From Mustelus asterias (taxonomy: Eukaryota), in NCBI RefSeq assembly GCF_964213995.1, contig NW_027590189.1, positions 434,001 to 498,000 of the forward strand: a DNA stretch of 64,000 bases, given 5' to 3'. Positions 15,966-64,000 of the stretch are shown here, one piece after another (the stretch's first letter is position 1; every line of letters begins with the position of its first letter). The position numbers and the translations under genes are program-made. Under the pieces are notes generated by a model. It ran no database searches and had not been told where the DNA came from. It saw only the letters and a program-made list of their open reading frames with translations.

Positions 15966-18900
15966 CAAAGAACAAAGAACAGTACAGCACAGGAAACAGG
16001 CCCTTCAGCCCTCCAAGCCTGTGCCGCTCCTTGGTCCAACTAGACCAATCATTTGTATCCCTCCATTCCCAGGCTGCTCATGTGACTATCCAGGTAAGTC
16101 TTAAACGATGTCAGCGTGTCTGCCTCCACCACCCTACTTGGCAGCGCATTCCAGGCCCCCACCATCCTCTGTGTAAAAAACATCCCTCTGATATCTGAGT
16201 TATACTTCGCCCCGCTCAGCTTGAACCCGTGACCCCTCGTGATCGTCACTTCTGATCTGGGAAAATGCTTTCCCCCGTTCACCCTATCTATCCCCTTCAT
16301 AATCTAGTACACCTCTATTAGATCTCCCCTCATTCTCCGTCTTTCCAGGGAGAACAACCCCAGTTTACCCAATCTCTCCTCATAGCTAAGACCCTCCATA
16401 CCAGGCAACATCCTGGTAAACCTTCTCTGCACTCTCTCTAACGCCTCCACGTCCTTCTGGTAGTGCGGAGATCAGAACTGGATGCAGTACTCCAAATGTG
16501 GCCTAACCAGCGTTCTATACAGCTGCATCATCAGACTCCAGCTTTTATACTCTATACCCCATCCTATAAAGAGAAGCATACCATATGCCTTCTTCACCAC
16601 CTTCTGCACCTGTGTTGCCACCTTCAAGGATTTGTGGACTTGCACACCTAGGTCCCTCTGTGTTTCTATACTCTTGATGGATCTGCCATTTATTGTATAC
16701 CTCCTCCCGACATTATTTCTTCCAAAATGCATCACTTCACATTGATCTGGATTATATTCCATCTGCCACCTCTCCGCCCGAATTGCCCGCCAATGCTCAT
16801 CGCTATCCGCAAGTCAAGCCATCTTCGTGTCATCCGCAAACTTGCTGGTAACACCAGTTACACATTCTTCCAAATCATTTATATATATATATATCTATCA
16901 CAAACAGCAGAGATCCCAGTCCAGAGCCCTGCGGAACACCACTGGTCACAGACCTCCAGCTGGAAAAAGACCCTTCGACCGCTCCCCTCTGTCTCCTATG
17001 GCCAAGCCAGTTCTCCACCCATCTAGCCACTTCTCCTTGTACCCCATGAGCCTTAACCTTCTTAACCAACCTGCCATGTGAGACTTTGTCAAATGCCTTA
17101 CTGAAATCCATATCGACGACATCCATGGCCCTTCCTTCGTCAACCGTTTTTATCACTTCCTCAAAAAACTCCAACAAATTTGTAAGGCACGGCCTCCCTC
17201 TTACAAAACCATGCTGTCTGTCACTAATGAGATTATTCCATTCCAAATGCACATACATCCTGTCTCTAAGAATCCTCTCCAACAACTTCCCTACCACGGA
17301 CGTCAAACTCACCGGCCTATAATTTCCCAGGTTATCCCTGCTACCCTGCTTAAACAACGGGTCCACATTCACTATCCTCCAATCCTCAGGGACCTCACCT
17401 GTGTCCGAAGAAGCGACAAATATTTCCGTCAGAGGCCCAGCAATTTCATCTCTCGTCTCCCTGAGCAGTCTAGGATAGGTGCCTTCAGGCCCTGGGGCTT
17501 TGTCAGTTTTATTGTTCCCTAAAAAAACCTAACGCTTCCTCCCTTGTAATGGAGATTTTCTCTAACGGGTCAACACCTCCCTCCGAGACACTCCCGGTTA
17601 ACACGCCCCTCTCCTTCGTGAATACCGATGCAAAGTATTAATTTAGGATCTCCCCTATTCCCTTGGGTTCTAAGCATAATTCCCCTCCTTTGTCCCGGAG
17701 AGGTCCGATTTATCCCTGACAGCTCTTTTGCTCCTAATGTAGGAATAGGATGCCTTAGGATTCTCCTTAATCCTGCCTGCCAAGAACATCTCGTGACCTC
17801 TCTTTGCCCTTCTAACTCCCCGTTTGAGTTCTTTCCTATTCTCTCTGTATTCCTCCAGAGCTCCATCTATTTTCAGTTGCCTGGACTTAACGTACGCCTC
17901 CCTTTTCATTTTATTCTGATCCTCAATTTCCCTGGTTATCCACGGCTCTCGAATCCTACCTTTCCTATCTTTCCTTTTTACAGGCACATGCCTATCCTGC
18001 AGCCTTGTCAATAGTTCCTTAAAAGACTCCCACATGCCAGACGCGGACATACCCTCAAACATCCTCTCCCACTCAGCGTCCACCAATTCTTGCCTAATCC
18101 GGCTACCATTAGCCTTCCCCCAATTTAGCATACTGCCTGTAGGACAGCACTCATCCTTGTCCATTACTGTCCTAAAGTTAACAGAGTTGTGGTCACGTTT
18201 TGCCAAATGTTCCCCTACCGAAACTTTGACGACCTGATTGGGCTCAATTCCCAGAACTAGGTCCAGTAAAGCCCCCTCTCTCGTCGGGCTATCTACATAC
18301 TGTTCCAAAGAACCTTCCAGTACGCATTTTACAAATTCCTCCCCGTCCGGAACCCCAGCTCTAAGCACTTTCCAGTCTATACCGGGGAAATTAAAGTCAC
18401 CCACGACAACAACCCTATTTTTTCTGCACCTATCCAGAATCTCCTGATATATCCTTTCCTCCACTTCCCGTGGGCTGTTGGGTGGTCTGTAGTACACCCC
18501 CAGCATAGTGACTGCACCCTTCCTGTTTCTGAGTTCCACCCACAGCGACTCAGTACATGACCCCTCTAAGTTGTCTACCCTCTGCACAGCGGTAATATGC
18601 TCCCGAACTAATATCGCTACTCCCCCACTTTTTTTAACTCCTCCTCTGTCTCACCTAAAACACTTATACCCCGGAATATTCAGCTGCTAGTCCTGTCCTT
18701 TTAACCAAGTCTCCGTCACCACAACCACATCCAAATTCCGCGTAAGCATTAAGGCCCTAAGTTCATCTGCCTTACCCGTTACGCTCCTCTCATTGAAGCA
18801 GATGCACTCCAGACCTCCAGGCTCACTCAGGTCATCCTCCTCCAGAGTGCTCCTCTTCTTAGCTAGCCTTGACCTGGCCCCCAGCTCAACCCCAGCCTCA

Positions 18901-19438: not shown

Positions 19439-22400
19439 TGTGGTAAACCACTGTTATCTGTTATCTGTTGTGGTTAACCACTGTTAGTTCGTATCTATTA
19501 TTACCTGTATTTGTGGCACATCCCTGTCGGCTCCACCCAAGACTCCTCCCCCTGTTCCGGGTATAAAGGCGATGGCTCCTCCCTCTAGCCTTTGGTACAG
19601 GCCAGATCTCCAATAGGGATGGCTCCAAGTTCTTGTGAATAAAAGCCGACTTGTCTTGCTTACAACTAGTCTTTTGCTTGATTGATGGTGCATCAATTTT
19701 ATTCACAAGATTTTTAAAATGGAACAGATGTTAAAACCCGACAGACTGAATCTAGATCCTCAAACTGTAGGAGCGTCAAACACGTTTGATCACTGGCTGA
19801 AACGCTTTGAAGCCTACATCGCGCCTCCACTGTTGTCCGTACAGATGCCGACAAACTACGGGTGCTCCACAGCCGGGTAAGCAATGTAGTATATTCTATG
19901 ATTTGGGAGGCAGAAAGTTACAAGGACGCTATCGAACTTTTAAAGGGCCAGTATAACAAACGGCCGAATGAAGTCTACGCGAGACATCTCCTAGCTACGC
20001 GCAGACAGCAGCCAGGAGAATCGGTTGACCAATTCCTGCGCGCGTTGCGGCTGCTTGCCCGGAACTGCAACTGCAAGACTGTGACTGCCACCCAACACAC
20101 AGAGGACTGAATCAGGGGTGCCTTTGTCACGGGCATCGGGACGACCTATATGCAACAACGGCTACTGGAACAGGGTGCACTGGACTTAAAGAAAACGGTG
20201 GAACTGGCTGAATCCTTCGAGGTGACCTCCCAATATCTTGAGGCCTACTTACCTGACCACGTGGGCGCATCGTGGACACCGCAGCCGTCGCTACCACTGT
20301 ACTCGGCAGGGCCACAAATTTACGCCGCACCATGTCTCACCGGTGATCTGACCACTGCAGCAGCCTCTGGAGGCCCGAAATGCTACTTCTGCGGCCTGGG
20401 TAAGCACCCCCGACAACGTTGCCCGGCGAGGGAGTCGTTCTGCTCCGTGTGTGGGAAGAAGAGACACTATGCTAAAGTCTGCCGTAAGTCCACCTCCAAA
20501 TCCACGAGTGCCACGTGTGACCCGCGGGGGCCGCCATCTTGGATGACTCCGGCCGCGTGCGACCCGTGGCGGCCGCTATCTTGGATGACGTCATCGGCCG
20601 CCGGCAACCCGCGGGGGCCGCCATCTTGCATGACTTCGGCCGCGAGCGACCAGCAGGGGCCGCCATCTCCACCCTCATCAGCCCCCTATGGCTATCTGCA
20701 GGATTCAACGGTGGCATTGGTTACCCTGGCCCAGTCCAAGCCTCATCGATTCGCTAAGTCCATGATGGACATTGAGGTAAACGGGCACAGGGAGCATTGT
20801 TTGTTTGACAGTGGGAGTACGGAGAGCTTCATCCACCCTGATACAGTGCATCGATACACCCTTCCCGTGCGGTCCGTCAAGTAAACGATCTCCATGGCAT
20901 CGCAGTCCCGCTCTGTAAATGTCCTCGGGTACTGTGTGGTGACCCTGAAGGTGCGGGGCACAGTATACGATAACTTCAGGATCCTCGTGCTGCCACATCT
21001 TTGCGCTGCTGTACTCCTGGGGCTAGATTTCATTACCCATCTGAAGAGTGTCCCTATACAGTTTAATGGGCCTTTTCCCCCGCTCTCCGTTTGCAATCAG
21101 CGGCGTCTAAATTGCCCACCACGCACCACCTGCAGTCTTTCGACCCTTAAAATCGCCCCTCCCTCCTTGTTTGCGAATCTCACTCCTGACTGCAAGCCCA
21201 TCGCCACCAAGAGAAGGCAATATAGTGCTGGAGACGGGGCCTTTATCAGGTCCAAAGTCCAGTGGCTCCTCACGGGGGGGATCATCGAGGCCAGTACCAG
21301 CCACTGGAGAGCACAAGTGGTAGTCATTAAGACTGGGGAGAAACACAGAATGGTCATTGACTACAGTCAGACCATTCACCGATATACGCAGCTGGACGTG
21401 TACCCTCTCCCCCGCATGGTCAATCAGATTGCACAATATCGGGTGTTCTTCACTATTGACTTGAAGTCGGCGTACCACCAGCTCCCTATCCGCCCGGAGG
21501 ACCGCCAATATACGGCGTTCGAGGCGGATGGTTGTCTTTACCACTTCCTTTGGGTCCCTTTTGGCATCACCAACGGGGTCTCGGTTTTCCAGTGCGAAAT
21601 GGACCGAATGGTACACCAGAACGGACTGCGGGCCACCTTCCCGTACCTGGATAACGTCACCATCTGCGGCCATGACCAGCAGGACCACGATGCCAACCTC
21701 CACAGATTCCTGCACACGGCTAGCCTCCTTAACCTGACCTACAATAAGGAGAAGTGCGTGTTCCGTACACACCGCCTCGCCATCCTCGGGTACATAGTGG
21801 AGAATGGGGTCATCGGCCCCGATTCCGACCGTATGTGTCCCCTCCTGGAACTTCCCCTCCCTACTAGCCTCAAAGCACTGAGAAGATGCCTGGGTTTCTT
21901 CTCGTACTATGCACAGTGGGTCCCCAACTATGCGGATAAAGCCTGTCCGCTCATAAAATCCACCTCTTTTCCCCTGACGGCAGAGGCCCGTCTGGCCTTC
22001 GACCGCATCAAAGCTGATATTGCGAAGGCCATGATGCACGCTATAGACGAATCCATCCCGTTCCAAGTGGAGAGCGATGCGTCTGACTTCTCCCTAGCCA
22101 CCACCCTTAACCAGGTGGGCAGACCCGTGGCCTTCTTTTCACGAACCCTCCAAGGCCCCGAAACCCGACAATCCTCTGTCGAAAAGGAGGCCCAAGCCAT
22201 AGTGGAAGCTGTACGGCACTGGCATCACTATTTAGCTGGTAAACGGTTCACCCTACTCATGGACCAACGATCCGTTGCCTTCATGTTCAACAATACGCAG
22301 TGGGGCAAGATCAAGAACGACAAGATATTGCCGTGGAGGATTGAACTCTTCATCTACAATTACGATATCTTGTATCAGCCTGGGAAGCTCAATGAGCCAC

Positions 22401-23889
22401 CTGACGCCCTGTCCTGTGGAACATGTGCCAGTGCACAGGTGGACCGGTTACAGGCTCTCCACAACGACCTCTGCCACCCGGGGGTCACCAGGTTTTTTCA
22501 CTTCATTAGAGCCCGAAACCTGCCCTACTCCGTTGTGGATGTCAGGTCCATAACTCAGAATTGTCAGGTCTGCGCGGAATGCAAGCCGCGCTTCTACCGA
22601 CCAGACAGGGCACAGCTCATAAAAGCCACCCGCCCCTTCGAACGCCTAAGCATTGACTTCAAAGGCCCCCTCCCCTCATCTGATCGCAACATATATTTCC
22701 TCAATGTCATTGACGAGTATTCACGTGTCCCCTTCACTATTCCCTGCCCAGATATGTCCTCGGCCACGGTCATCAGGGCTCTGTGCAGCCTCTTCACCCT
22801 GTTCGGTTTCCCTAGCTATATCCATAGCGACCGGGGATCCTCCTTCATGAGTGATGGACTGCGACGGTACCTGCTCTCCAAAGGTATAGCCACAAGTAGG
22901 ACTACTAGCTACAACCCCCGGGGAAAAGGACAGGTTGAGAGAGAGAACGCAACAGTCTGGAAGACCGTTTTACTGGCGCTACTGTCTAAAGGCCTTCCAG
23001 TCACCCGCTGGCGAGAGGTCCTACCGGAGGCACTACACTCCATTTGGTCCCTCCTGTGCACGGCAACCAATGCCACTCCCCACGAACGGATGTACATGTT
23101 CCCCAGGAAGTCTTCCTCGGGGACTTCACTACCATCGTGTCTGGCATACCCGGGCCCTGTCCTGCTTCGGAAGCATGTCAGGACCCGTAAGTCTGACCCC
23201 CTGGTCAAAAGGGTTCAAATCCTCCACGCCAACCCCCAGTACGCCTATGTGGTGTACTCTGATGGGCGGGAGGACACGGTATTTATCCGTGACCTCGCAC
23301 CCGCAGGTGACTCAGGGATGAATATGGACCCCAACCCCTCATCCCCAATCCCCAACTTTGTCCCTACCACGTCAGAACCACTATTCACTCCTCTCACCCC
23401 CTATTACAGCTCGCCTGAGCCCCAGGAGTCGTCACCACGCACTCAACGATCGGACGAGACTACGGATGACAACAACTTCCTGGTGCTTGAAACAACACCG
23501 CGAACTGAACCTACATTGGAACCGGCACTACGGCGATCGCAGTGGCAGAGCAAGCCTCCAGATAGACTGAACCTGTAAATATTGTTCATTCTGCCTCACC
23601 CCCGATGGACTCTTTTTTAAACAGGGGGTGAATGTGGTAAACCACTGTTATCTGTTATCTGTTGTGGTTAACCACTGTTAGTTAGTATCTATTATTACCT
23701 GTATTTGTGGTACATCCCTGTCGGCTCCGCCCAAGACTCTTCCCCCTGGTCCGGGTATAAAGGCGGTGGCTCCTCCCTCTAGCCTTTAGTACAGACCAGA
23801 TCTCCGACAGGGATGGCTCCAAGTTCTTGTGAATAAAAGCCTATTTGTCTTGCTTACAACTAGTCTTTTGCTTGATTGATGGTGAATCA
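19439..23889 (+). mobile_element. Gypsy/Ty3 LTR retrotransposon, full length, gag/pol interrupted by frameshifts and stops
   Basis: 257-bp LTRs TG..CA at 19439-19695 and 23633-23889 (about 13 mismatches by eye). PPT aaacagggggtgaa before the 3' LTR. Gag starts MEQMLKPDRL at ~19719, followed by a CCHC knuckle, protease LFDSGS, then RT-RNaseH-IN. Confidence 0.95.
20894..23578 (+). CDS. Gypsy pol (RT, RNase H, integrase), 894-aa ORF
   Basis: IDLKSAYHQ, PFGITNG, FPYLDNVTI (RT); VESDASD and SSVEKEA (RNase H); LHNDLCHPG..CQVC, SIDFKGP, IHSDRG, GQVERENA (integrase). Confidence 0.9.
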   Translation: MASQSRSVNVLGYCVVTLKVRGTVYDNFRILVLPHLCAAVLLGLDFITHLKSVPIQFNGPFPPLSVCNQRRLNCPPRTTCSLSTLKIAPPSLFANLTPDCKPIATKRRQYSAGDGAFIRSKVQWLLTGGIIEASTSHWRAQVVVIKTGEKHRMVIDYSQTIHRYTQLDVYPLPRMVNQIAQYRVFFTIDLKSAYHQLPIRPEDRQYTAFEADGCLYHFLWVPFGITNGVSVFQCEMDRMVHQNGLRATFPYLDNVTICGHDQQDHDANLHRFLHTASLLNLTYNKEKCVFRTHRLAILGYIVENGVIGPDSDRMCPLLELPLPTSLKALRRCLGFFSYYAQWVPNYADKACPLIKSTSFPLTAEARLAFDRIKADIAKAMMHAIDESIPFQVESDASDFSLATTLNQVGRPVAFFSRTLQGPETRQSSVEKEAQAIVEAVRHWHHYLAGKRFTLLMDQRSVAFMFNNTQWGKIKNDKILPWRIELFIYNYDILYQPGKLNEPPDALSCGTCASAQVDRLQALHNDLCHPGVTRFFHFIRARNLPYSVVDVRSITQNCQVCAECKPRFYRPDRAQLIKATRPFERLSIDFKGPLPSSDRNIYFLNVIDEYSRVPFTIPCPDMSSATVIRALCSLFTLFGFPSYIHSDRGSSFMSDGLRRYLLSKGIATSRTTSYNPRGKGQVERENATVWKTVLLALLSKGLPVTRWREVLPEALHSIWSLLCTATNATPHERMYMFPRKSSSGTSLPSCLAYPGPVLLRKHVRTRKSDPLVKRVQILHANPQYAYVVYSDGREDTVFIRDLAPAGDSGMNMDPNPSSPIPNFVPTTSEPLFTPLTPYYSSPEPQESSPRTQRSDETTDDNNFLVLETTPRTEPTLEPALRRSQWQSKPPDRLNL

Positions 23890-25261: not shown

Positions 25262-26455
25262 TGTTACACACACAGATATACACACAGTGTGACACCCACA
25301 CACAGATGGACACACAGTGTGACACCCACACACAGATATACACGCAGTGACACATACCGTGTGTTACACACACAGATATACACACAGTGACACACACACA
25401 CAGATAGAGACGCAGTGACACACACAGATATATACATAGTGACACACATACAGATATATACACAGTGACACATAGATATACACACAGTGACACACACAGA
25501 CAGAGACACAGTGACACAAAAGATATACACAAGTGTGACACACACACAGAGGTATACACACAGTGTGACATACACACACACAGATATACGCAGTGTCATG
25601 CACACATATACACACACACAGATATATACATAGTGTTACACACACACAGATAGAAACACAGTGTGATATACACGCACAGATCTACATGCAGTGACACATA
25701 CACAGTGCGACACATACACATAGATATACACACAGTGTTACACACACAGATATACACACAGTGTGACACCCACACACAGATGGACACACAGTGTGACACC
25801 CACACACAGATATACACGCAGTGACACATACCGTGTGACACACACACACACAGATATACACACAGTGTCACACACACAGATATACACACACAGATATACA
25901 CACAGTGTGACACTCACACACAGATAGACACACAGTGTGACACACAGATATACACACAGTGAGAGACACACAGAGATATACACAGTGTGCCACACACATA
26001 GATACACACAATGTGACACACACAGATATACACTCAGTGTCACACATATAGGTATACATGGTGTGACACATATGCAGATATACAGTGTGACACACGCACA
26101 CAGATATATACAGAGTGTCACACACACAGATATACACAGACACAGATATACATAGACACAGTGTAACACCCACACACAGATAGACACACACTGCGACACA
26201 CAGATATACACACAGTGTCACACATATAGGTATGCATGGTGTGACACATATGCAGATATACACAGTGTGACTCATGCACACAGATATACACAGACGCAGA
26301 TATACACACAGTGTGACACCCACACACAGATAGACACACATTGTGAAACACAAATATATACATAGTATGACACACGCACACAGATGTACACATAGTGACA
26401 CACACAGTTATACAGACAGTGTGCCACACACACACACACAAAGACGTACACACAG
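25262..26455. repeat. CA-rich complex microsatellite (acacacagatatacacacagtgt)
   Basis: Directly visible. Confidence 0.9.
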
Positions 26456-29433: not shown

Positions 29434-29472
29434 CACAGCATTAGATTACAGCTAAAACCCCGTACAAAAACC
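29434..29472 (+). other. 23-RSS
   Basis: cacagca + 23 nt + acaaaaacc. Confidence 0.92.
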
Positions 29473-49779: not shown

Positions 49780-50911
49780 GCAGGGATAAACAAGATCGAG
49801 ATTGTCTCCTCCTCCAATGGATACAAAATTGGCTTCTTGACGCAAGCCAGAGGATGGTTGGAGAGGGTTGTTTTTTCAAACTGGACGCCTGTGACCAGCA
49901 GTGTGCCTCGGGGATCAGTGCTGGGTCCACTGTTATTTGTCATTTAGATTAATGATTTGGATGAGGATATAGGAGGCATGGTTAGTAAGTTTGCAGATGA
50001 CACTAAGATTGGTGGCATAGGGGAGAGTGAAGAAAGTTATCTTCAATTGCAACGGGATCTTGATTGTGCCAGTGGGCTGACGAATGGCAGATGGAGTCTA
50101 ACTTAGACAATGCGAAGTGATGCGTTTTGTTAGATTGAACCAGGGCAGGACTTACTCAGTTAATGGTAGGGCGTTGGGAAGCGTTAGAGAACAAAGAGAT
50201 CTAAGGGTACATGTTCATAGCTCCTTGAAAGTGGAGTCTCGGGTGGACAGAATGGTGAAAAAAGCATTCGGCATGCTTGGTTTCATCGGTCAGAACATTG
50301 AATACAGGAGTTGGGACGTCTTGTTGAAGTTGTACAGGACATTGGGAAGCCCACACTTGGAATACGGTGTGCAATTCTGGTCACCCTATCATAGAAAGGA
50401 TATTATTAAACTAGAAAGAGTGCAGAAAAGATTTACTAGGATGCTACCGTGACTTGATGGATTGAGTTATAAGGAGAGGCTGGATAGACTAGTACTTTTT
50501 TCTCTGGAGCGTAGGAGGCTGAGGGGTGATCTTATGGAGGTCTTTAAAATGATGAGGCGCATCGATCAGCTAGATAGCCAATATCCATTCCCAGAGTTGC
50601 AGAGTCTAAAACTAGAGAGCATAGGTTTAAGGTGAGAGGGGAGAGATTCAAAACTGTCCAGAGGGGCATTTTTTTCACACAGAGGGCGGTGAGCGTCTCG
50701 AACAAGCTGCCAGAGGTAGTAGTAGAGGCGGGTATAATTTTGTCTTTTAAGAAGCTTTTAGATAGCTACGTGGATGTGAAGGCTATGGAGGGATATGGGC
50801 CAAATGCGGGCAATTGGGATTAGCTTAGGGGTTTAAAAAAAAGGGCGGCATGGACAAGTTGGGTCGAAGGGCCTGTTTCCATGCTGTAAACCTCCATGAC
50901 TCTATGACTCT
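49780..50911 (+). mobile_element. CR1 RT 3' portion, degenerate
   Basis: GSVLGPLLFVI, KFADDT, HLEYGVQFWSP, FFTQR; tail ctccatgactctatgactcta. Confidence 0.9.
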
Positions 50912-51226
50912 ACTGGCATCGCCAGCGAAGCCCACATCCCCTGAATCAATAACAATAAATAATGTACTCGAAACCAAGTAGAGCATGCCACCCACAACTG
51001 TTGATCACCTGCTGAAATTCTGGATTCTCGCTGCCGGGAGTTTCGACTGAAAATTCACAGCTCAGTTCCCCATTTAAATACTTGAGTTTCATTTTAAACT
51101 GTGGGCGTGGCCTAATTTACCATTGATCGGGTCTGAAGTATTTCAGTGCAGCTCTGATATCCAGTCTCCCAGAGCAGTCCAGCTCTGTAGTCTCAGCTCC
51201 CTGGCATATAAACCGTCAGCAGAACG

Positions 51227-51722
51227 ATGGGAATCCTTCTTGTTTTCACCCTGTGTGCCTGTTTACCCTGATGAGTACCGATCAAACTCACCCACATTGC
51301 GTGGATTGAATATAAAGCTGCCCCAGTCCATCTCAATTACAGACACTGTCTAGGATTTTAGCCCCTTTGTTTGGTCCATTAAACTCTGTGTTTAATTTCC
51401 AGGATCTTTCAATCAGTCAGTGACACAGAGCCTGGCAGCGTTGACCAGGAAGGAGTGTCAGTCTCTTACCATCACCTGTGTTTTCTATGGAGTTTATGAT
51501 TTAGAAAATGGTCATTTTTTTCAGACAAATCCAGACCGGGACGGAGCGGGAGCGGATCTCCAGCGGAGGGAGATTTATTGTACTGGTGAATAAAGCAGAA
51601 AAGACATTTTCACTGGAAATTCGGGATGTGAGAGTTGAAGACAGTGCCACCTATTACTGTAAAGTTCAGCACTGGTACTACTCACATAGGACACTGCACT
51701 GGGAGAGAGTTCGACAAAAACC
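51227..51722 (+). pseudogene. NAR-TCR V pseudogene (leader 51227-51269, V exon 51403-51694, broken 12-RSS to 51722)
   Basis: Paralog of 61150-60669. Donor mutated (gatgagt), +1 frameshift in the T run near 51515-51521, heptamer decayed to tgcactg, 12-nt spacer, perfect nonamer acaaaaacc. Confidence 0.88.
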
Positions 51723-52057
51723 TCAGGACAATCAAAACAGTAATTCCCAGCAATTCCCATGTTCGGTAACTTGACTTGTCGGGTTGATGTTATTCCCAGT
51801 TCAATCTAGTTTAATTTCATTGTAATTTCCACCATCAGCTATAATTCTTCAAGGCTTTTCGCTGTTAATAAGAATCTTGCATCTCTGCTCCTGTTCCTGG
51901 GAAATTTTACCAGGAGCTCAGAGAGTCAGAAGGAAAACTTTTGTCCAATGATGTTTTGTTTTTAAACAACCAATGTTCATTATTGATTTAAATCCCCTGA
52001 ATAACCGAGAAACACTGATTGCTGGGTAATGGCTGCTCGGCAGTTTGAGGTGTCAGT

Positions 52058-52148
52058 CATTCTTGTGCTGGGCTGACTGAGAGCGCTGACACTGTGGGGA
52101 GAATGAAGGTTACAGATGGGTCTGGGACGGTGGTGACTATCACAGCCG
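52058..52148 (+). other. NAR-TCR J segment (52097-52148) with upstream 23-RSS
   Basis: cattcttgt + 23 nt + cactgtg, then GRMKVTDGSGTVVTITA-G|gtaagt (open frame, phase 1). Confidence 0.88.
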
Positions 52149-52436
52149 GTAAGTGACTCCTAATCCCAGTGTGTTGCAGCCTGTTTAGGTTAGTGTTCAC
52201 CGTCAGTTTAAATTCGTTACCAGCATCACTTCAATTGTCTGCTTCTAAAGCAGGGTGGTTTCCTGAGGAAGATTTTCAATTGCAGATTTAGACTTAGGAG
52301 CAGAGTATGAAACGGAAGTCGAGTCCGGCTGTGAGACCAGTTTGAAGCAGTGTGAGACCCCAAAGGGCAGGTTTCCTCCGGGGAAGGAGTTTCAGCTGAT
52401 CCTATCTGGGCTATTATTGGTTTAAGGAACAGCAAA

Positions 52437-52927
52437 AAGTCTCACAACACTAGATTAAAGGCCGACAGGTTTACTTCGAATCACGAGCTTTCGGACCGCT
52501 GCTCCTTTCTCAGATGTGTGGAGAGTTGGGTTCACAAACATGGCAGCTATAGACAGAGACGCAATTGCAAGAAAATGGTTGGAATGCGAGTCTTTACAGG
52601 TAATCAAATCTTTACAGGTGCAGACAATGCGAGTGAAGAGAGGGATATTCACAGGTCAAAGAGGTGTGAATTGTCTCAAACCAGGACAGATGGCAGGACT
52701 TTGCAAGCCAGGGAAAATGGTAGAGGTTACATGTAGTGTGACATGAACCCAAGATCCCGGTCCTCAAAGACGCGCATTCCAACCATTATCTTGGAATTGC
52801 GTCTCTGTCTACATATGCCATGTTTGTGAACCCAACTCACCATTCACCTGAGAAAGTAGCAGTACTCCGAAAGCTCGTGATTCCAAATAAAACGGTTGGA
52901 CTTTAACCTGGTGTTGTGAGACTTCTT
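52437..52927. mobile_element. Penelope-like element remnant with long inverted termini
   Basis: aagtctcacaacac..aatcacgagctttcgga is inverted against tccgaaagctcgtgatt..gtgttgtgagactt. Confidence 0.6.
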
Positions 52928-53047
52928 ACCGTGCCCACCCCATTCCAACGCCAGCGTCTCCAATCATGGTTTAAGGAAGGCATCGGGTAATCCTCACAAC
53001 ATCTTGCACTCTCACTCTCCTAACTGGTTTCAGTGAGCGTACATTCG

Positions 53048-53385
53048 GGGAGGTGATGGCCAAATGGAATTATCGCTGGACTATTAATTCAAAAACACAG
53101 CCAAAGTTCTGGGAGTCCCGCCAGCGCAGATGGTGGAATTTCAATTTAATAATCATATCTGGAATTAAGAATCTACTGATGACCATGAAGCCATTGTCGA
53201 TTGTCAGAAAAACCCATCTGATTCACTAATGCCCTTCAGGGAAGGAAACCTGCTGTCCTTGCCTGGTCTGGCCTACATGTGACAGCAGAGCCACAGCAAT
53301 GTGGTTGACTCACAACTGCCTTAGGGTACCTGGGGATGGGCAGCAAGCCAGCGACGACGCCCATGTCACATCAATGAATAAAAAT
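53048..53385 (+). mobile_element. Second SINE family (DeuSINE-like core); another copy at ~58340-58720
   Basis: Shared core tcactaatg.cct..agggaaggaaa.ctgc..tcctt..ctggtctggcctacatgtg in both copies. Confidence 0.55.
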
Positions 53386-54569
53386 ACATTATGGACGCTC
53401 CGAACCCTGCTCCCTGCTCTCCGCTGGGAGAGAGCGGAGCCACCGAGCACAGGATTTCTCTCTGCTCCAGGAAATGGTCTAAAAGAGGCCTGGAAATGTC
53501 AACGAGATACCGGGAGAGGTAACCCAAAATTGCAGCAGCCGGTCCAATACCTGCAGCGGCAGGAAAACGGGAACATGACACAAATAGCTTCGAGAGCTTA
53601 TTTGATACTTGTAGGTGACATTTCACGTGCAATCAGTGACTCAAAATAATTATATCCTAACTGATCTTTATTTCCTTCCTATAAACAATCATTTTGGCAG
53701 AACTGCGAAAAGTTTGAATTGCATTCTCTTCCACATATTGATCGCTAATTGTGGACAAATCCGTTTGCTTTATGTTTTTTGTCGATTTCAAAAACATGGG
53801 ATTGTGCTGATTGAAGCATAATGAATCCCTCAAGGATTGAGTTGTGTCGAGGCTGAGGGTGCTGAACCGTTCCATGGATTTTAGTTTTGAATGCTAATGG
53901 AAGTAATGGATTTGGGAATAGGACGCACAGTTAGCATTAAGGTAGATGATCAGATCTAAACATTTCTGATTTGTACAGCGGGTCCCCAAGGTGGATTAGT
54001 CTACCATGTTTCTATTTCTTAAGTATCTTATTATCAGCATGAATTTCTTACACTTCTGAGAAAAAAAAATCAATAATGTGTTTGGGTATCGAAAGTTTGG
54101 AAAAGCTCTGCCTTTTGGCTTTCGAAGGCCGGTAAGACATGAAAAAGCAGCACAGAAACACTGAACATTATATTGTAGTTTCAAGGAGCTCCATGTGCAG
54201 AAACTGTTCCTTCGGTGGGAGAGTTGTTCTTTTATCTTCTTTAATTCATTCGTGTGACATGGTGTCGCTGGTTGGCCAGCATTTATTGTGCATTCCTGGT
54301 CGCCCTTCAAATCAATGGCTGGCTGGGCCATTTTTAAGGGCAGTTGAGAGTCAATCACATTGCTGTGGCTTTTTCTGAACATCGGAAATGGTTTCACGGT
54401 CAGCAGCAGATACTTAACTTCAGATGTTTAAAAATTGAAGTCAAATTCCACCAACTGCCGAGGCAGGATTCGAACCAGGGTCCCCAGAAGAAGTAGATAT
54501 TTATATATGAAATATGAAATGACTATCAGAAGAGATAGAAACATTCGGGTATATTTGTGCGGAAACACA

Positions 54570-55441
54570 TCAACTTGCAGAGGGATTTGGACCAACGAGA
54601 AAAATGGGCTGAAAAATGGCAGATGGAATTTAACGCAGACAAGTGTGAGATATTGCACTTTGGAAGGACAAACCAAAGAAGAACGTACAGGGTAAATGGT
54701 AGGACTCTGAAGAGTGCAGTTGAACAGAGGGATCTGGGAATACAGGTACAGAAGTCCCTAAAAGTGACGTCACAGGTGGATAGGGTCGTAAAGAGTGCCT
54801 TTGGTACATTGGCCTTTATAAATCGGAGTATCGAGTATAAAAGTTGGAGTGTTATGGTAAGGTTATATAAGGCATTGGTGAGGCCGAATTTGGAGTATTG
54901 TGTACAGTTTTGGTCACCTAGTTACAGGAAGGATGTAAATAAGATTGAAAGAGTGCAGAGAAGGTTCACAAGGATGTTGCCGGGACTTGAGAAGCTGAGT
55001 TACAGAGAGAGATTGAATAGGTTGCGACTTTATTCCCTGGAGCGTAGAAGATTGAGGGGAGATTTGATAGAGGTGTATAAGATTTTGATGGGTATAGATA
55101 GAGTGAATGCAAGCAGGCTTTTTCCGCTGAGGCTGGGGGAGAAAAAAACCAGAGGGAATGGGTTAAGGGTGAAAAGAGAAAAGTTTAAAGGGAATATTAG
55201 GGGGGGCTTCTTCACGCAGAGAGTGGTGGGAGTGTGGAATGAGCTGCCGGATAAAGTGGTAAATGCGGGGTCACTTTTAACATTTAAGAAAAACTTGGAC
55301 GGGTTCATGGATGAGAGGGGTGTGGAGGGATATGGTCCAAGTGCAGGTCAGTGGGACTAGGCATAAAATGGTTCGGCACAGACAAGAAGGGCCAAAAGTC
55401 CTGTTTCTGAGCTGTAATTTTCTATGGTTCTATGGTTCTAT
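54570..55441 (+). mobile_element. CR1 RT 3' fragment
   Basis: ORF 54557-55360 LQRDLD..WQMEFNADKC..LVRPNLEYCVQFWSP; tail ttctatggttctatggttcta. Confidence 0.92.
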
Positions 55442-56483
55442 GTGAAGCTCGCTCTTTGGAAAAACGTCGTGATGAATTTATGGCACAGCTTGAAAAATAT
55501 GGGCGGGAGAGAGGAATAAATAGACACACAGCTGAGGATGAGAGGAGAAGGGGATGTACGAGAACAAGCTTCGATCATCTGGACCAAGTGGCCTATTCGT
55601 GTTCAGTGGAAAGTGTAGAATATAAAACTCAGAGACTATTCTGTTCGGAAAGGACAGGGAACAATCAGCCAATGGACTGAAGGGATTGAAATTATCACAT
55701 CCCGTAAAGGCAGTTCCCAGTGAGTAACAGTAAAACCACTGCGGAAACTGAACAGACTGAACCAACCGATAACTGAGAGAAATTAGGGCACGTTTTCATG
55801 ACGGTTAGAAACCGCCATGAACAGACAGAAAACAACTCAGATGTAGAAATAAAATGAAATCAACTTGCAAATATTTCTAATGGAAGTAAAACGGTAGAAT
55901 TGATGGACGGAAAGAGACAAATAGCCCAACGGCAGACTGGATTTACCTTGTAATGTTGAACTGCGGCCAAAAGTCGATCTTTGACCCACAGATTTACATT
56001 GTCATTTCGGATTAATAGGTGTGGACGAAAATCTCTGTTCTGTGCTGAACCTTGGTATGTACTGAAATATAAGACTGCTGATTTTCCTTCGGACAATCAA
56101 ATCTAGACAACAATTGATTCATTGACGGGAAGAGTGAACTTTACGATTTAGTTTTCTGGTTCGCATTTCACCAACATATTTATTAGCAGATATTTAATAA
56201 AAATAAAATCATACTCTGCAAAAAAAACACAATTCTGTCAATAATGACAGTAATTTGAAGGTGCTGCCAATATATCCATTCGTTCTTCTTTTTGTCCCCA
56301 CTGGAATCTTGTCCTGTCCCAGAAGTCTTTGTCCCTCAATTGCCCCTCAAGATAATGTTCAATCTGCTTCCAGAACCACCCCTTCCGCAGTGCACTTCAG
56401 GTGACTGCAATTCTCTGTGAAAAAAAGATCTGAAGATCTGCCACGCTTGTTTATTTCCAATAATCAATGCATTTTGAAACACA

Positions 56484-57168
56484 TTCATAGAATCCTTACA
56501 GGACAGAAGGAGGCCATTTGGCCCGTCAAGTCTGTACCGACCACATCCCACCGAGTCCCAGGCAATATTCCCATAACCCCACATATTTATCCTTCTAATC
56601 TTTCTCGGACACTAGGGTCAATTTACCTTGGCCAATCAACGTAATCTGCACATCTTTGGACTGTGGGATGAAATCGGAGCACCCGGAGTAAACCCAAACA
56701 CACACGGGGAGAATGTGCAAACTCCACACAGACAATGACCCGAGGCCAGAATTGAACCTGGGTCCCTGCCGCTGTGAGGCAGCATTGGCAACCACTCTGC
56801 CACCGTGCCACCCCCTAGGGCGGCACGGTAGCACAGTGGTTAGCACTGCTGCTTCACAGCTCCAGGGACCCGGGTTCGATTCCCGGCTTGGGTCACTGTC
56901 TGTGTGGAGTTTGCACATTCTCCTCGTGTCTGCGTGGGTTTCCTCCGGGTGCTCCGGTTTCCTCCCACAGTCCAAAGATGTGTGGGTTAGGTTGATTGGC
57001 TGTGCTAAAAATTGCCCTTAGTGTCCTGAGATGTGTAGGTTAGAGGGATTAGTGGGTAAATGTGTAGGGATATGGGGGTAGGGCCTGGGTGGGATTGTGG
57101 TCGGTGCAGACTCGATGGGCCGAATGGCCTCTTTCTGTACTGTAGGGTTTCTATGATTCTATGATTCT
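56484..57168. mobile_element. Head-to-head pair of HE1-like SINEs (minus 56484-56812, plus 56817-57168)
   Basis: Two opposed tRNA-like heads meet at ~56815. The plus copy is near consensus with CR1-type tail ttctatgattctatgattcta. Confidence 0.88.
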
Positions 57169-57275
57169 AATTAAATTAAACAAATTGCCACAACAGACAG
57201 GTGTTCATCCGATTGACAAGTTTTCCCGGGTAAACAGTGGCTCAACAAACAATTCATTTTATTTCTACACTGCAG

Positions 57276-57578
57276 ATTCCAGCTCAGCTGTGTCACCAAG
57301 TTCCCTTCTACAAACCTCTGCTGCCGGTGACCGGTTATTTGAAGCTGCGAATATTCAGGTCTCTGTCAGTACACAGTACACGTACCCTCAGACCCCAGGA
57401 CAGGCTCAGAAATACCTGCTTCAGACACACATTTCTGGAGAGGAGAATAAATCAAACAGTGTCGCGGGGAGGATTTCTGCTTCTATCGATTCTTCCGTCA
57501 AAATCAGCCGGTTAAAGATCTCCAAACTTTAACTGAGCGACTCCGCTGTTTATTACTGTGAACTGAGTTGGCGCACAG
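57276..57578 (+). pseudogene. Supporting TCR Vdelta (NAR-TCR partner) pseudogene, leaderless
   Basis: Acceptor ctgcag|, SSAVS..LQT.AAGD, frameshifts around CDR1, KYLLQTHISGEENK..RISASIDSSVKISRLKISKL*LSDSAVYYCELSW. Paralog of 58185-57880. Confidence 0.85.
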
Positions 57579-57739
57579 CACAGTCGCACAGAACACGGAG
57601 AGAGCTGTACAAAAACCTGAACGTGGTGAGGATTACAGACACAGTGATACAGAACACGGAGAGAGTTGTACAAAAACCTGGACATGATGAGGGTTACAGA
57701 CACAGTGACACAGAACACGGAGACAGCTGTACAAAAACC
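57579..57739 (+). repeat. Three tandem 23-RSSs, 61-bp period
   Basis: Heptamers at 57579 (cacagtc), 57640 and 57701 (cacagtg), each followed by 23 nt and acaaaaacc (57609, 57670, 57731). Confidence 0.95.
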
Positions 57740-57779
57740 TGAACATGCATTTCAGATTCTTGGGAGCTCACCATGTTCA

Positions 57780-57879
57780 GGCTTCTGTATAACTCGCCCC
57801 GTCTTCTGTATCACTTTGTCTGTAATCCTCACCATGTTCAAGTTTCTGTACGGCTCTCTCCCTGTTCTGCATCACTGTG
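57780..57879 (-). repeat. Two tandem 23-RSSs, 61-bp period (first canonical heptamer, second degenerate)
   Basis: cacagtg + 23 + acagaaact (57879-57841); caaagtg + 23 + acagaagcc (57818-57780). Confidence 0.9.
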
Positions 57880-58185
57880 CTGTGCGCCCACTCAGTGCAC
57901 AGTAATACACAGCGGAGTCGCTCAATCGCAGCTTGGAGATCTTTAACCAGCTGATTTTTTCGACAGGGTCGACAGAAGCAGAAATTCTCTGCCCGGCAGC
58001 GTTTTCTTTGATCGCCTCGCCTGATGTGTGTCTCTTAAGCAAGTATTTTGGGGTCTCTCCTGGAGAGTGACGGTACCAGTAGAGTGTGTGTTGACAAAAT
58101 CCTGGATATTCACAGTTTAAAGTAATGGTGTCGTCAGCAGCACAGGTTTGGAGAGACGGATTCTGTGACACAGATGAACTGGATT
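57880..58185 (-). CDS. Supporting TCR Vdelta of NAR-TCR, intact and leaderless, Cys in CDR1
   Basis: Phase-1 acceptor ctgcag| (an alternative in-frame acceptor starts the exon at 58194). SSVSQNP..TLNCEYPGFCQHTLYWYRH..LKISKLRLSDSAVYYCALSGR. The nearest recognisable upstream donor belongs to the NAR J, and no leader exon is seen. Confidence 0.9.
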
Positions 58186-60217
58186 CTGCAGAACCTATAA
58201 AATAATGCATTTCTATGATTCCATTACTTGCGTTGCATGTTAGTTTGCCCAGGGAAATATAATCGCGTCAATAGCTCGCCATTTTCCCGTAATTGTTTCA
58301 TTAAAGGGTGTGCGACATTTATTCACTATAATTAATTAGGGAGACGGTGGCAAAGTGGTATTATGACTGGATTGCTTAATCCAGAGATTTAGTAATCCAA
58401 GTAATACGCTGGGGACACGGGTACGAATGGTGCCACGGAAGATGGTGAAATTTGAATTTCAATTCAATATTGAATTGATTTCAATAAAACAAGCATGTTA
58501 ATTCAAAGATGACTATGAAAACATTGTCGATTGCCGTTAAAACCACATGTGTTTGACTAATGTTCTTGAGGGAAGGAAATCTGCCATCCTTATCTGGTCT
58601 GGCCTACATGTGGCTCCTGATACACAAAAATGCGGTTGACTCTTAAATGCCCTCTAAAATGGGCTTCGCAAGCCATCCTGTTCAAAGGCAATTAGGGACA
58701 CCCACATCCAGAGGATGAATTGAAAAAAAATGGCAAAAGAGCCGAGGGGCAGATACTTAGATGATTTTTTTTGTACACAGCGAATTTTGCTCATCTGGAT
58801 TATTTGGAGATGTGTGTTGGAAACAAATTCAACACTCATTTTCGAACGGTAAATGGAAGAAATATACAGAATCAGATTAGAATTCCGGGGGTTTGAAGAG
58901 CAGGAAGGTAAAATAGGAAACGTTCAGTAGCACCTGCAAAGAATGACCACTTGGTCAGAGTGATGTCCTTCTCTGGTTTCTGATTTTATATTTTATATTT
59001 AGTGTCTGCTTCTGTGTATATTGGCGATTTACAAACCTGAGGAAATTATATGAAAGTTCACTCTTCTCACTATAACAATTGCTGTCCAGAGTTGATTGAC
59101 TGAGAGTAACACTGCCGTTTTATATGCTGGGTCGCATCAAGATTCAGGCAAAGACGGTCATACTCGCCCAGCGAAACTGATTAAGCGAAACTGACATTGC
59201 ATATCTGTGTCAAAGATCAACCTTTGACTACAGTCCAACTCTTTGCACAGTTTCGTCCATCAATTCTACAATTTATATTATATATTAGAATGATTTACAG
59301 TTAATACCAGTGGATTTATAAATCTGAGTTGTTCTCTTTGTACTGCTTGCGATTTCTTGCCACCACGAGAACCTGTCCCAGACACTCTCCAATGTCAGTT
59401 GAGATCAGCATGCTCAGTTTCCCCGATTGACTTGCTCACTGTTACTCACTGTGAAGATTGCCTTTTCAAGGTGCCTGAGATTTTCAATTCCTTCCATCCA
59501 TTGGTTGATTGTTCCCCATGCTTTCTGGGCAGAATCCTCTCTGTATTTTATATTATATAGATTCCACAGAACAGAAGTAGGCCAGTCGGCTCACAGTACG
59601 CTTGTCCTTGCACTGCGCACTACTCCCCTCTCACACTCGATCCCTAACGAAACCATTGTACACTGAGCACTGTGTCCTTCTCCCTCCTCGATCTTTCACG
59701 CCGTCTGAAAAATTCCTTACGCCATTTACTGCAACCACTCCATGTGGCAGCTCGCTCCACATTCCTCCTAATTTCTTTTTCTTTTATCTCACTGGCATCA
59801 TATTAAATGTTTCTTTAATCTGAATCATTTTCTCCACACGTACATTAATGAATCTATCAATTAATGCTAAAGATTTATATCAACACCAAAACCTGAAAAA
59901 TGTTGGCAAACCTCAACAGGTCTGGAGACAGAATAGAGTCAACGTTTCCAGTCTGGATGACCCTCCGTAAGAGCCACAGAGAGAAGCAAAGTTGACACGA
60001 GGACAGAAGTCATAGCTTCAAAATGTGGACCCGACTCCAGTTTCCTATTCTGCTCCCAAATCTAAAACTGCAATTGAAAATCTTCCACAGAAACCCCCTT
60101 CCCCCACGCTGCTATTGTAGTCACAGAGGATTGAAGAGAGGCAGACGACAAGAATGAACTGACGGCGAAAACGAACCAGGACATTCTGCAATACGGGGGG
60201 GATTTGGAGTCACTTAC

Positions 60218-60309
60218 CAGCTGAGACAGTCACCACCGTCCCAGACCCGTCTGTAAATCTCCACTCTCCCCACAGTGTCAGCGCTCTCAGTCAGCCCAGT
60301 ACACGAATG
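60218..60309 (-). other. NAR-TCR J segment (60270-60218) with 23-RSS
   Basis: cattcgtgt + 23 nt + cactgtg, then GEWRFTDGSGTVVTVSA-G|gtaagt. Confidence 0.88.
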
Positions 60310-60640
60310 ACAGACACCTCAAACTGATGGGGAAAAAATTACCGAATAGTCAGCGTTTATCAATTATTCAGGGGTTATAGATCAATAATGAAGTATGATA
60401 GTTTTATAATTCCCATTGGAACAAACTGTTCCTTGGGACACTCTGAACTCTTGGCAAAATGGCCCAGGAACGGAGTGGAGATGGACGCTTCGTAGAAATG
60501 GAATAAAAAAGTTAAAGAAAGATAACTGAAGGGAGGAAATTACAACGAAATGAAATCATGTTGCAACGATAATAACAACAACCCGACAAGCTATGGTCCG
60601 TGTCCTGGAAATTATTGCTTCGCTTGTTCAGAAATACTTA

Positions 60641-60668
60641 AGTATTTGTTCTCCTCTCTTCCACTGTG
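60641..60668 (-). other. 12-RSS of the NAR-TCR V
   Basis: cacagtg + gaagagaggaga (12 nt) + acaaatact. Confidence 0.88.
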
Positions 60669-61150
60669 GTGTCCCATGTGCGTAGTACCAGTGCTGAGCT
60701 TTACAGTAATAGGTGGCGGTGTCTTCAATTCTCATGTCCCGAATTTCCAGCGAAAATGTCTTTTCTGCTTCATTCACCGACACAACAAACCTCCCTCCGC
60801 TGGAGATCCGCTCCCGCTCTGTCCCAGTCTGGGTTTGTCTGAAGAAATGGCCATTTTTTAAATCATAAACACCATTGAAAACACAGGTGATGGTGAGAGA
60901 CTGACACTCCTTCCTGGTCACCGCTGCCGGGCTTTGAGTCACTGACTGACTGAAACATCCTGGAAATTCAACACAGAGAGTTTAATGGACCATCAGAGCC
61001 GAACCGCACAACGGGGCTAAAACCCCAGACAGTGTTTGTAATTGAGATGGACTGGGGCAGCTTTATGTTCAATCCACACAATGTGGGTTAGTTTGATCGG
61101 TACTCACGGGGTAAATAGGCACACATGGTGAAAACAAGAAGGATTTCCAT
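60669..61150 (-). CDS. NAR-TCR V segment (IgNAR-like V), apparently intact; leader 61150-61108, V exon 60959-60669
   Basis: Leader MEILLVFTMCAYLP|gtgagt. V: SVTQSPAAVTRKECQSLTITCVF..FFRQTQTGTERERISSGGRFVVSVNEAEKTFSLEIRDMRIEDTATYYCKAQHWYYAHGT. Short FR2-CDR2 region as in VNAR and an extra FR1 Cys. Confidence 0.92.
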
Positions 61151-62142: not shown

Positions 62143-63358
62143 ATGTGAAAGAATTTATGGGCTCCCGTTTTCATTCTTGTTCTGAAGCTAGGTGAGTTCT
62201 TTAGCTTTCATTCGAACGAAGTTTTGTCACATAACTATTGAAGGAGGGACGGATGTGTGAACAAGGGGTGAACTATGGGGCCTTTAAGGGGATAATAGAG
62301 GATGGATGGATGAACAGACGGACAGTAGGATGGATGGAGGAATGGACGGATGCGAGTTTTGAGTGACCATTCACTTTGATTGGAGTGAAGTTTACAATAG
62401 TTTGCTGCAGTTAAAACTTAGGTAATTGGAGGGAAAGAATATTGGATGAATGTATGGAAAATGCTGAAGGTGTTGGTTCAAATTGCACTTTAAAAACCAA
62501 ATAGAATTCTTGCCTCTATTGATAATGTGCAAATACAAAACAAAAGATTTATTCACAGATAATCAGGCTTCGGTTGAAGTATGACAACCACGAGAGAAAG
62601 AGAGTTAATGTTTCGAGTCCATATGATTCTTCCACAGAATCTGAACAAAAGTCATATGGACTCCAGATGTTAACTCTGCATTTGTCTTCACAGATGCTGC
62701 CAGACCTGCTGAGTTTATGCAGCAGATTCTGTTTCTATATGCTGATTGAAATGTTAGTTAAAGTAAACTTCCTCTTAACAGTTAAGAAACTGCATGAATT
62801 TTTGAAGGTAGGAGATTTTCAGTGCAATGCGGAAAGAACAGACTGCAGGGTAAAATAGTAACTCCATCGTCTGCCAATGCGGGTAATATATACTGAATAT
62901 TCTCGTTATTTGCTTTAATACTTAATGATTCTATGTCGAGGAGAATGAATGAATGTTGACTGAGGTTCCCCATATTTAAACGTATATCTATTTTCTGGTT
63001 ACCATTTGAAGGACTGTGTTATTCTGATACTGTAAAGCAAACTGCACCGTCAGTATCATGTTTAGAACAAGAACGCATGGTGTTGCCCTGTTCATTCTCC
63101 ACAGACAGCCGCCGCGATGATCTGCTCTGGTACCGACAAAATCCGAGGGAGGAGTCGGTATTTTTAATCAAAAGGAATTCGGAGGGAAATACAAAGAAAG
63201 CTGAGCGTGTGGGAGGCCGATTCTGGTCAATACTCTGAGTATCAGATCGTTTCTTCAGTTTCACCCTGGCAGATGTACAGCTGAGTGACAGTGAGGTGTA
63301 TTACTGTGCGCTGATCATTCACAGTGATACAAACTGATACAAGACCCTTACGGAAACT
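62143..63358 (+). pseudogene. TCR alpha/delta V pseudogene (leader 62143-62191, V exon 63012-63319, 23-RSS 63320-63358)
   Basis: Leader M*KNLWAPVFILVLKL-G|gtgagt. V: DTVKQT..LPCSFS..LLWYRQ..in-frame TGA at 63236..LADVQLSDSEVYYCALII. RSS cacagtg + 23 + acggaaact. Confidence 0.85.
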
Positions 63359-64000
63359 ACCACTGGACTGCAACATCAGCCGAGTGATAGGAGTTCACTT
63401 TGTGAACTCTGAACCTTCACCTCTGGCAGCTGCAGAATCAGACCGAGACCGTTTATTGCTGTGTGAATGTAGTCGGAAGTAGAGATGATCGATGTGAAAA
63501 GGCATTCTGAATGACTGAGTTCCTGACAAAATAGGGTGAGAGAAAAGCAAGGAAAAATAAACAGGAAGATAGAACGGCAGCGAAAAAAGGGAGCAAAAGG
63601 CCGTGAGACACAAAGAGGTAGCGCGCTGGACGTCAAGGTGGACGCAGAGAGTTAAAGAAAGACTCTCTGAGAGTTAGAATCAGAAAAATAGAAAAGAAGA
63701 AAGTAAGAGAAGAATATAGAGAAGGGGGAGAGGGAAAATAGGGAGATAATAAGAGAGAGAACGAGACAGGGCCTGAGACAAAGGCAGAGAAACAAAATTG
63801 CACTTTAACCTCATCTTATTCGATTTCTAATGTGTGATTATATTTTATCAGTGGCCCCACTAAATATAATCACACATGAGTGGAATAAGATCAGTGGCCC
63901 CAGGAAATGAATCACATCCCTCAGTAAAGATAGTTAGCTTGCTGGTTTGAGTGTACTCACTGAATGACTGATCCCACCAGGAAATATTTAATCCTGTCGG

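Follow-up and report, generated by a model that had tools for sequence, protein, structure and literature searches.

Both supporting Vdelta segments of the NAR-TCR type in a 64,000-nucleotide stretch of Mustelus asterias DNA (contig NW_027590189.1, positions 434,001 to 498,000; hereafter the window) are followed by a tandem repeat with a 61-bp period. Each repeat unit consists of one recombination signal sequence (RSS) with a 23-nucleotide spacer, 39 nucleotides in all, plus a 22-nucleotide linker. Three units follow the segment on the plus strand (57579-57747) and two follow the segment on the minus strand (57879-57767). By the textbook rule, a gene segment has a single recombination signal. 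Contigs from four sequencing runs indicate that the repeat is a family-wide trait of supporting Vdelta segments and not an assembly artefact. Our preferred explanation, which we regard as probable, is that the arrays are an inherited, family-wide minisatellite of RAG-type signals that is nearly neutral, with possible side effects as decoys or capture sites.

The period of 61 nucleotides is reported by Tandem Repeats Finder for both arrays, with 2.9 copies at 57575-57747 on the plus arm (88% matches, score 276) and 1.9 copies at 57767-57883 on the minus arm (78% matches, score 148). A repeat search likewise finds the 61-nucleotide copies in register, three of them (starting at 57579, 57640 and 57701) on the plus arm and two on the minus arm. 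The spacer is exactly 23 nucleotides long in all five units. In four of the five the heptamer begins with CAC and the nonamer includes three consecutive A's; the exception on both counts is the second minus unit, whose nonamer has only two adjacent A's. The first plus unit (57579-57617) is the V segment's own 23-RSS, with a heptamer that matches the consensus at six of seven positions (position 7 is changed) and a nonamer that matches at nine of nine. The second (57640-57678) and third (57701-57739) plus units match at 7/7 and 9/9 positions, and the third has no partner on the minus arm. An earlier note on this DNA had described three heptamer-23-nonamer units at 57579, 57640 and 57701 with perfect nonamers, and all three do have a 23-nucleotide spacer and a 9/9 nonamer. 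On the minus strand, the intact V segment's own 23-RSS (57841-57879) has a 7/7 heptamer and a 7/9 nonamer, with changes at positions 4 and 9. The second minus unit (57780-57818) is a decayed 23-RSS, in which heptamer position 3 is changed, such that CAC is lost, and the nonamer matches at 7/9 positions. It is in register with the other units, but lies below the threshold of a heptamer-spacer-nonamer scan. The two units previously counted behind the minus copy are therefore upheld as repeat units, but as signals only one of them is plausible, because the second lacks CAC.

The heptamer-spacer-nonamer scan detects 18 sites across the 64-kb window, including the three plus units and the first minus unit. 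When the consensus is searched as six heptamer letters, N24 and the nonamer, with up to two mismatches, the window yields 6 matches where 0.22 are expected, a number that no shuffle out of 100 attained. Matches with zero mismatches number three, and all belong to the plus array. The linkers of the plus arm at 57618-57639 (linker 1) and 57679-57700 (linker 2) have one and three mismatches, respectively, relative to linker 1 of the minus arm (57819-57840). With minus linker 1 as the query and up to three mismatches allowed, the linker occurs three times in the window, solely within the arrays, and 0.00 occurrences are expected, in agreement with the earlier description of the unit as an RSS joined to a conserved 22-nucleotide linker. 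The outermost linkers are cut short, to 8 nucleotides on the plus arm (linker 3, 57740-57747) and to 13 nucleotides on the minus arm (linker 2, 57767-57779). Between them is a unique centre of 19 nucleotides (57748-57766), which is the axis of an inverted duplication. The heptamer of the first unit in each array adjoins the V coding end and the distal heptamers adjoin linker, which would become the "coding end" if distal units were used. By reading, the middle of the full-length linker (57618-57639, 57819-57840) resembles a splice donor, and its end resembles an acceptor.

The two V-type exons that carry the arrays face each other, with 301 nucleotides between them. The minus-strand exon (57880-58185) has an open frame that matches the Pfam V-set family (E 2.9e-13, 50.4 bits, cut-off 26), an AG acceptor directly at the domain start, and a Cys in complementarity-determining region 1 (CDR1). 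Its plus-strand counterpart (57276-57578) also has an AG acceptor directly before the start of the V domain, and is a pseudogene. Its frame is interrupted by a TAA at 57530-57532, two deletions (of 1 and of 2 nucleotides) set it apart from the minus copy, Cys23 and Trp41 are lost, and the stretch that would hold the CDR1 Cys is frame-broken. Two letters that are absent from the plus V after 57381 are retained by other copies in read contigs. Inspection of the translated 300 nucleotides upstream of either supporting V, which was not a formal exon search, revealed no leader-like open frame.

Each supporting Vdelta is located downstream of a NAR-type V in the same orientation. The NAR-type V of the minus cassette (60670-60951) is open, has a Cys in the a-b loop and no Trp at the WYRQ position, and matches Pfam V-set with an E value of 1.1e-07. 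It is followed by one 12-RSS at 60668 and lies ~2.5 kb upstream of the minus supporting V on the same strand. The NAR-type V of the plus cassette (51400-51682, start approximate) is frameshifted, with a reading frame that switches in the middle of the domain. In its best candidate RSS the heptamer is poor (5/7) and the spacer is 24 nucleotides long, whereas the intact minus counterpart has a 12-RSS. The whole plus cassette looks dead. NAR-TcR V segments with an associated TcR delta V have been described, in which the supporting V is leaderless and carries an extra CDR1 Cys, and the NAR V carries an a-b loop Cys and lacks the WYRK Trp (PMC1845163). The segments in the window match these features, and the label "supporting Vdelta" given to them previously therefore holds, on the strength of a V-set domain, the lack of a visible leader, the CDR1 Cys, and a NAR-type V upstream. 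A PDB search with the supporting V returns V domains generally and does not discriminate among V types. In a simple pattern search, no FGXG-type J motif was found between the NAR-type V and the supporting V in either cassette (58186-60668 on the minus strand and 51683-57270 on the plus strand). A homologue search with the intact supporting V in a protein database that seemingly contains almost no shark V sequences gave six word-sharing candidates, none of which reached a score.

In the window, arrays are confined to supporting Vdelta segments (two of two, versus none of six other V segments). A single signal with unrelated sequence downstream is found for all four conventional V segments (signals at 29434, 38507, 42578 and 63320) and for both NAR-type V segments. 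The conventional V at 63000-63360 contains an in-frame stop, and its signal can be read with a spacer of either 12 or 23 nucleotides.

Independent short-read contigs demonstrate that the repeat is real, that it is present in multiple copies, and that it occurs in runs labelled as three organisms. We considered 12 sequencing runs from four studies, in which the fraction of sampled words present was 0.59-0.76 for four runs of organism D and 0.21-0.23 for organisms A and B. Logan contigs of runs X9 and X11 (organism D), X1 (A) and X2 (B) were compared at 80% likeness. Contig depth would point to far more units than V copies, but summed contig depth is not copy number, and we therefore cite contig counts and single pieces. 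The 61-nucleotide unit is found on many distinct contigs across these four independent runs. At linker position 57623, a letter different from that in the window is carried by 25 distinct contigs in X9, 14 in X11, 12 in X1 and 1 in X2, and accounts for the entire depth at this position in X9 and X11. For comparison, the counts for the other letter at V position 57432 are 10, 6, 3 and 3 contigs, in the same order of runs. Record 25 of X9 and record 11 of X11 both correspond to 57363-57700 with 55 other letters, and represent another V copy that continues through two units. Record 13 of X11 follows 57466-57676 and then steps back to 57617-57732, and so represents another copy with at least four heptamer starts; it has 37 other letters over 211 nucleotides of V end and array. 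Contig joints that step back by 60 nucleotides are also present. The three organisms are close relatives, ~97% identical over the minus V, and the presence of the repeat in all three is therefore not deep conservation. A degenerate linker-plus-heptamer pattern gave no matches in metagenome contigs.

These contigs also bear on whether the arrays might be an artefact of assembly, through the collapse or expansion of repeats or the creation of a false palindrome, which we consider highly improbable. No listed contig spans the whole stretch, and the exact numbers of units at this locus (three and two) are unconfirmed by any single read or contig. On the other hand, the two arms are only ~78-82% alike, and so do not represent a mirrored read. 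Moreover, individual contigs cover the unit junctions (X1 record 5, 57579-57704, with 14 other letters and no gap), the axis (X2 record 22, an 88-nucleotide contig covering 57701-57788, with 3 other letters and no gap) and the minus array together with its V segment (X2 record 23, 57808-58182, with 12 other letters). Records 20 and 21 of X2 additionally cover 57611-57701 and 57640-57708.

The sequence relationships between the two cassettes indicate how old the repeat is likely to be. The cassette arms align by blastn with 78.4% identity (50909-52326 vs 61471-60027) and 77.6% identity (57270-57691 vs 58191-57767), and are an old inverted duplication. Matching units are 83-85% identical between arms, and the divergence of the array is thus close to that of the cassette outside it. 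Only one of the 22 positions of linker 1 differs between arms, and the arms share the 61-nucleotide register and the unit junction. Because both arrays have the same register, linker and duplication junction, a single origin is indicated, and independent origins are very unlikely. Minus units 1 and 2 differ at 11 of 52 positions (79% identity), about the same as the arms differ from each other, and the tandem duplication is therefore no younger than the inverted one. The predicted fold of this stretch as single-stranded DNA has an energy of -112.7 kcal/mol (shuffled sequences, -45.9 +/- 4.1; z -16.1); in it, like-numbered units of the two arms are paired (1 with 1, 2 with 2) and the third plus unit is looped out. 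One tandem duplication thus predates the inverted duplication of the cassette, and the earlier proposal that the repeat is older than the duplication of the two paralogs is supported by the shared register, the nearly unchanged linker and the unit-to-unit pairing.

Units of the plus array are 87-91% alike, and thus closer to each other than the arms are, which points to later turnover of units in that array. The axis lies between linkers cut to 8 and 13 nucleotides, and the inverted duplication therefore broke inside an array. In another copy, six further linker letters follow 57747 in the read contigs before the sequence becomes unrelated. Because the contigs leave the linker at this point, the first ~14 nucleotides of the linker would represent sequence that originally flanked the signal downstream, and its final ~8 nucleotides a remnant of the coding end. 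Three other origins were considered and rejected. Replication of a RAG hairpin does not explain the palindrome, as the axis lies away from any heptamer border, within cut linkers that are separated by 19 unique nucleotides. Inserted fragments of RAG signal ends would not yield units in one orientation, and separate duplications in each arm do not agree with a unit junction that is common to both.

We propose that a founding duplication in an ancestor of the supporting-Vdelta family created the 61-nucleotide unit, by copying a stretch that comprised approximately the last 8 nucleotides of coding flank, the 39-nucleotide signal and ~14 nucleotides of downstream flank, the breakpoints being deduced from the linker. 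All descendant copies would have inherited the repeat, including the two convergent copies in the window. Unequal exchange or slippage would then have shifted the number of units, to three and two here and to at least four in another copy.

In the window there is no sign that selection has kept the extra signals. Among the five units, variable columns make up 2 of 7 in the heptamer, 3 of 9 in the nonamer, 11 of 23 in the spacer and 4 of 22 in the linker. Motif columns are no better conserved than the remainder (5/16 vs 15/45 variable; Fisher p=1.0, at the low power that five units allow). Similarly, when matching units are compared between arms, 6 of 32 motif positions differ versus 12 of 81 other positions (p=0.58). 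The intact V has one usable signal, its distal unit lacking both CAC and the A-run, while the dead cassette has three near-perfect signals. This distribution runs against function, because the better array belongs to the dead cassette and the poorer one to the intact V. The refuting test that the earlier note had itself set, a comparison of the heptamers and nonamers of distal units with their spacers, thus comes out against function, if only weakly so with five units. Among the options that the earlier note had listed, a neutral slippage repeat fits best, while for the idea that the arrays concentrate RAG on the segment the evidence tips neither way.

Several observations weigh against near-neutrality. 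The dead plus cassette retains 47 of 48 motif letters, which is surprisingly clean for an old pseudogene, and calls either for units that have recently turned over or been converted by other arrays, or for selection that is independent of the neighbouring V segment. The linker is the least variable segment (4/22 vs 11/23 for the spacer; p=0.057), which plain neutrality does not predict. The repeat has also outlived ~22% divergence, and such persistence would be expected of a useful element as well. The conservation tests themselves are based on five units and have little power.

Published assays with mouse and human signals permit some estimate of how RAG might treat the individual units. A heptamer that starts with CAC is required (PMC2193808, PMC2212273); changes to this CAC greatly reduce recombination, and most other positions tolerate change (PMC2193808). 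A synthetic signal with the exact nonamer of minus unit 1 recombined at 5.6 +/- 2.8% in a mouse plasmid assay, versus 7.6 +/- 2.1% for the consensus (PMC2193808, Table I), and physiological J signals share the heptamer variant of plus unit 1 (PMC2193808). The nonamer needs three consecutive A's, and human VkappaII signals normally have G in place of A at its position 4 (PMC2212273). Judged by sequence and by analogy with these assays, RAG could plausibly act on four of the five units. Use of a signal beyond the first also has precedents. In competition plasmids with two like signals, position was without effect on relative use (PMC2212273), and alternative signals that adjoin a canonical one leave the germline RSS in mouse TRB coding joints (PMC6857471). 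By analogy, RAG can probably cut at distal units of the shark arrays, and would then leave the proximal signal inside the coding joint.

The consequences of such a joint depend on the reading frame. In the minus V, the last letters of heptamer 1 and the first base of the spacer together form a TGA that closes the frame, whereas the plus frame is open through all three units, up to a TGA just after the third nonamer. The earlier note had described this stop and this open frame, and frame reading confirms them. A distal join in the intact copy therefore carries a stop and can never be productive. The open plus frame is moot, because the plus V already contains the in-frame TAA. Thus, a distal joint in the intact copy would be a dead end or an intermediate that a later proximal join can remove. 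Each distal join would be a detour that costs a D or J partner, and the extra units would be at most decoys or capture sites, and not added productive chances.

A selected role for the arrays is a possible but rather unlikely alternative. Under this "capture and refine" scheme, several signals would multiply the chance that RAG forms a synapsis with the 12-RSS of Ddelta or Jdelta. A distal join would bring the leaderless V to the recombination centre, and a proximal join to the next D or J would make the real joint. Such a device would raise the use of supporting V segments, inverted ones especially, with the depletion of D segments as a side effect. By sequence, all units but one are plausible signals, the irrelevance of position in plasmid competition substrates (PMC2212273) agrees with their use, the arrays are restricted to supporting V segments within the window, and other family copies among the read contigs have them too. 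The receptor also requires that two joins be made in cis, and every second cassette is oriented away from the other V segments. However, the array of the sole intact cassette is the poorer one, with a single usable signal, and the best array is that of the dead cassette. Motif positions are not better conserved than the remainder, distal joins waste D and J partners, and descent from one ancestor explains the family-wide presence equally well. The more specific idea of nested rearrangement, with distal joins first and a final proximal join that couples the V to the recombination centre at the expense of D segments, is in our estimation slightly less likely still. If true, it would be the first natural case in which RSS copy number tunes V usage and junction make-up. 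A further proposal, also raised in the earlier note, is that serial rearrangement gives extra productive attempts, or that the arrays supply RSS-derived sequence to CDR3, and this we judge very doubtful. The plus frame is open through three units and retained proximal signals could in principle be recut, but that open frame belongs to a V with a TAA, two frame-breaking deletions and the loss of Cys23 and Trp41. RSS-derived CDR3 sequence would be possible only in this pseudogene copy, and the TGA at the border of heptamer 1 and spacer excludes it, at the level of sequence, in the intact copy. Serial rearrangement would not offer a second attempt either. Only the proximal join can be open, and because it can presumably occur only once, distal joins add no productive attempts.

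Alternatively, the conserved part might be the linker or the whole repeat, acting as a row of binding sites for a putative factor or in a structural role where the convergent cassettes meet, such as that of a boundary or of a palindrome prone to form cruciforms, with the signals as passengers. We consider this improbable. It would account for the linker as the least variable segment and is compatible with the very stable hairpin that the arrays are predicted to form as single-stranded DNA (z -16.1). The p-value for the linker, however, is marginal and derives from five units. Moreover, the hairpin follows trivially from the inverted duplication, and the position at the axis is inherited. An inherited and nearly neutral minisatellite of signals remains our preferred explanation.

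The arrays resemble several known systems in part. Like the canonical single 23-RSS of TCR alpha/delta V segments, they have the heptamer-23-nonamer layout, and unit 1 adjoins the V end. Unlike it, they have three or two head-to-tail units with a fixed 22-nucleotide linker. Alternative RSSs of mouse TRBJ1-7 and TRBJ1-2 are similar in that a second signal is found tens of nucleotides beyond the canonical one, and in that use of the outer signal would leave the canonical signal in the coding joint (PMC6857471). Those mouse signals are unrelated, weak sequences on the J side, and were found through rare events (PMC6857471), whereas the shark units, putative in their use, are consensus-grade duplicates on the V side and form arrays that a gene family shares. 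Competition plasmids (PMC2212273) also place several signals of one spacer class in one orientation on one molecule. In contrast to the natural locus described here, with bare signals 22 nucleotides apart behind a single V, these plasmids are artificial and carry whole V segments. Cryptic 23-RSSs in mouse gamma-satellite DNA (PMC2193808) are likewise RAG-cleavable 23-type signals on a tandem repeat, but they are chance look-alikes within a 234-bp centromeric repeat that is unrelated to gene segments, while the shark unit goes back to a genuine V signal and is still attached to the V. Finally, the period of 61 nucleotides, the unit identity of 78-88% and the variation in unit number between copies are features of an ordinary minisatellite. 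What distinguishes the shark repeat is that its unit is a complete recombination signal of functional type, such that changes in array copy number may alter site-specific recombination.

We found no printed description of tandem RSS arrays in the open-access library that was searched, and an earlier mention in the primary papers on shark NAR-TCR and TCR-delta loci is possible. A V subfamily with rows of near-consensus signals constitutes a natural "competition substrate" in a working antigen-receptor locus. It opens to tests in shark thymus the choice of position among equal signals, the recutting of retained signals, and the relationship between signal dosage and V usage. Even if neutral, the arrays show how readily RAG targets multiply in germline DNA, and they warn annotators that the RSS nearest to a V segment need not be the only one.

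The window as a whole is rich in minisatellites. Tandem Repeats Finder reports 137 rows in the 64 kb, and tandem duplication is therefore common in the region. Large examples are at 2659-3802 (41 nucleotides x 27.9), 10703-13448 (25 nucleotides x 111) and 15130-15966 (25 nucleotides x 35.6). A CA-rich minisatellite at 25267-26440 (~1.1 kb, with periods of 26, 52 and 128) contains consensus heptamers followed by CA-rich, nonamer-like runs, and the RSS scan detected three sites in it, at 25461, 25483 and 25507. Repeats at 19439-19496 and 23633-23690 have a near-identical consensus and are 4194 nucleotides apart, which suggests a direct segmental duplication of ~4.2 kb. Just upstream of the plus supporting V, at 56622-57009, there is a near-perfect hairpin with 192-nucleotide arms that are 84% complementary and separated by 4 nucleotides. 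This hairpin resides in sequence that is absent from the minus cassette, and is probably an inserted repeat element.

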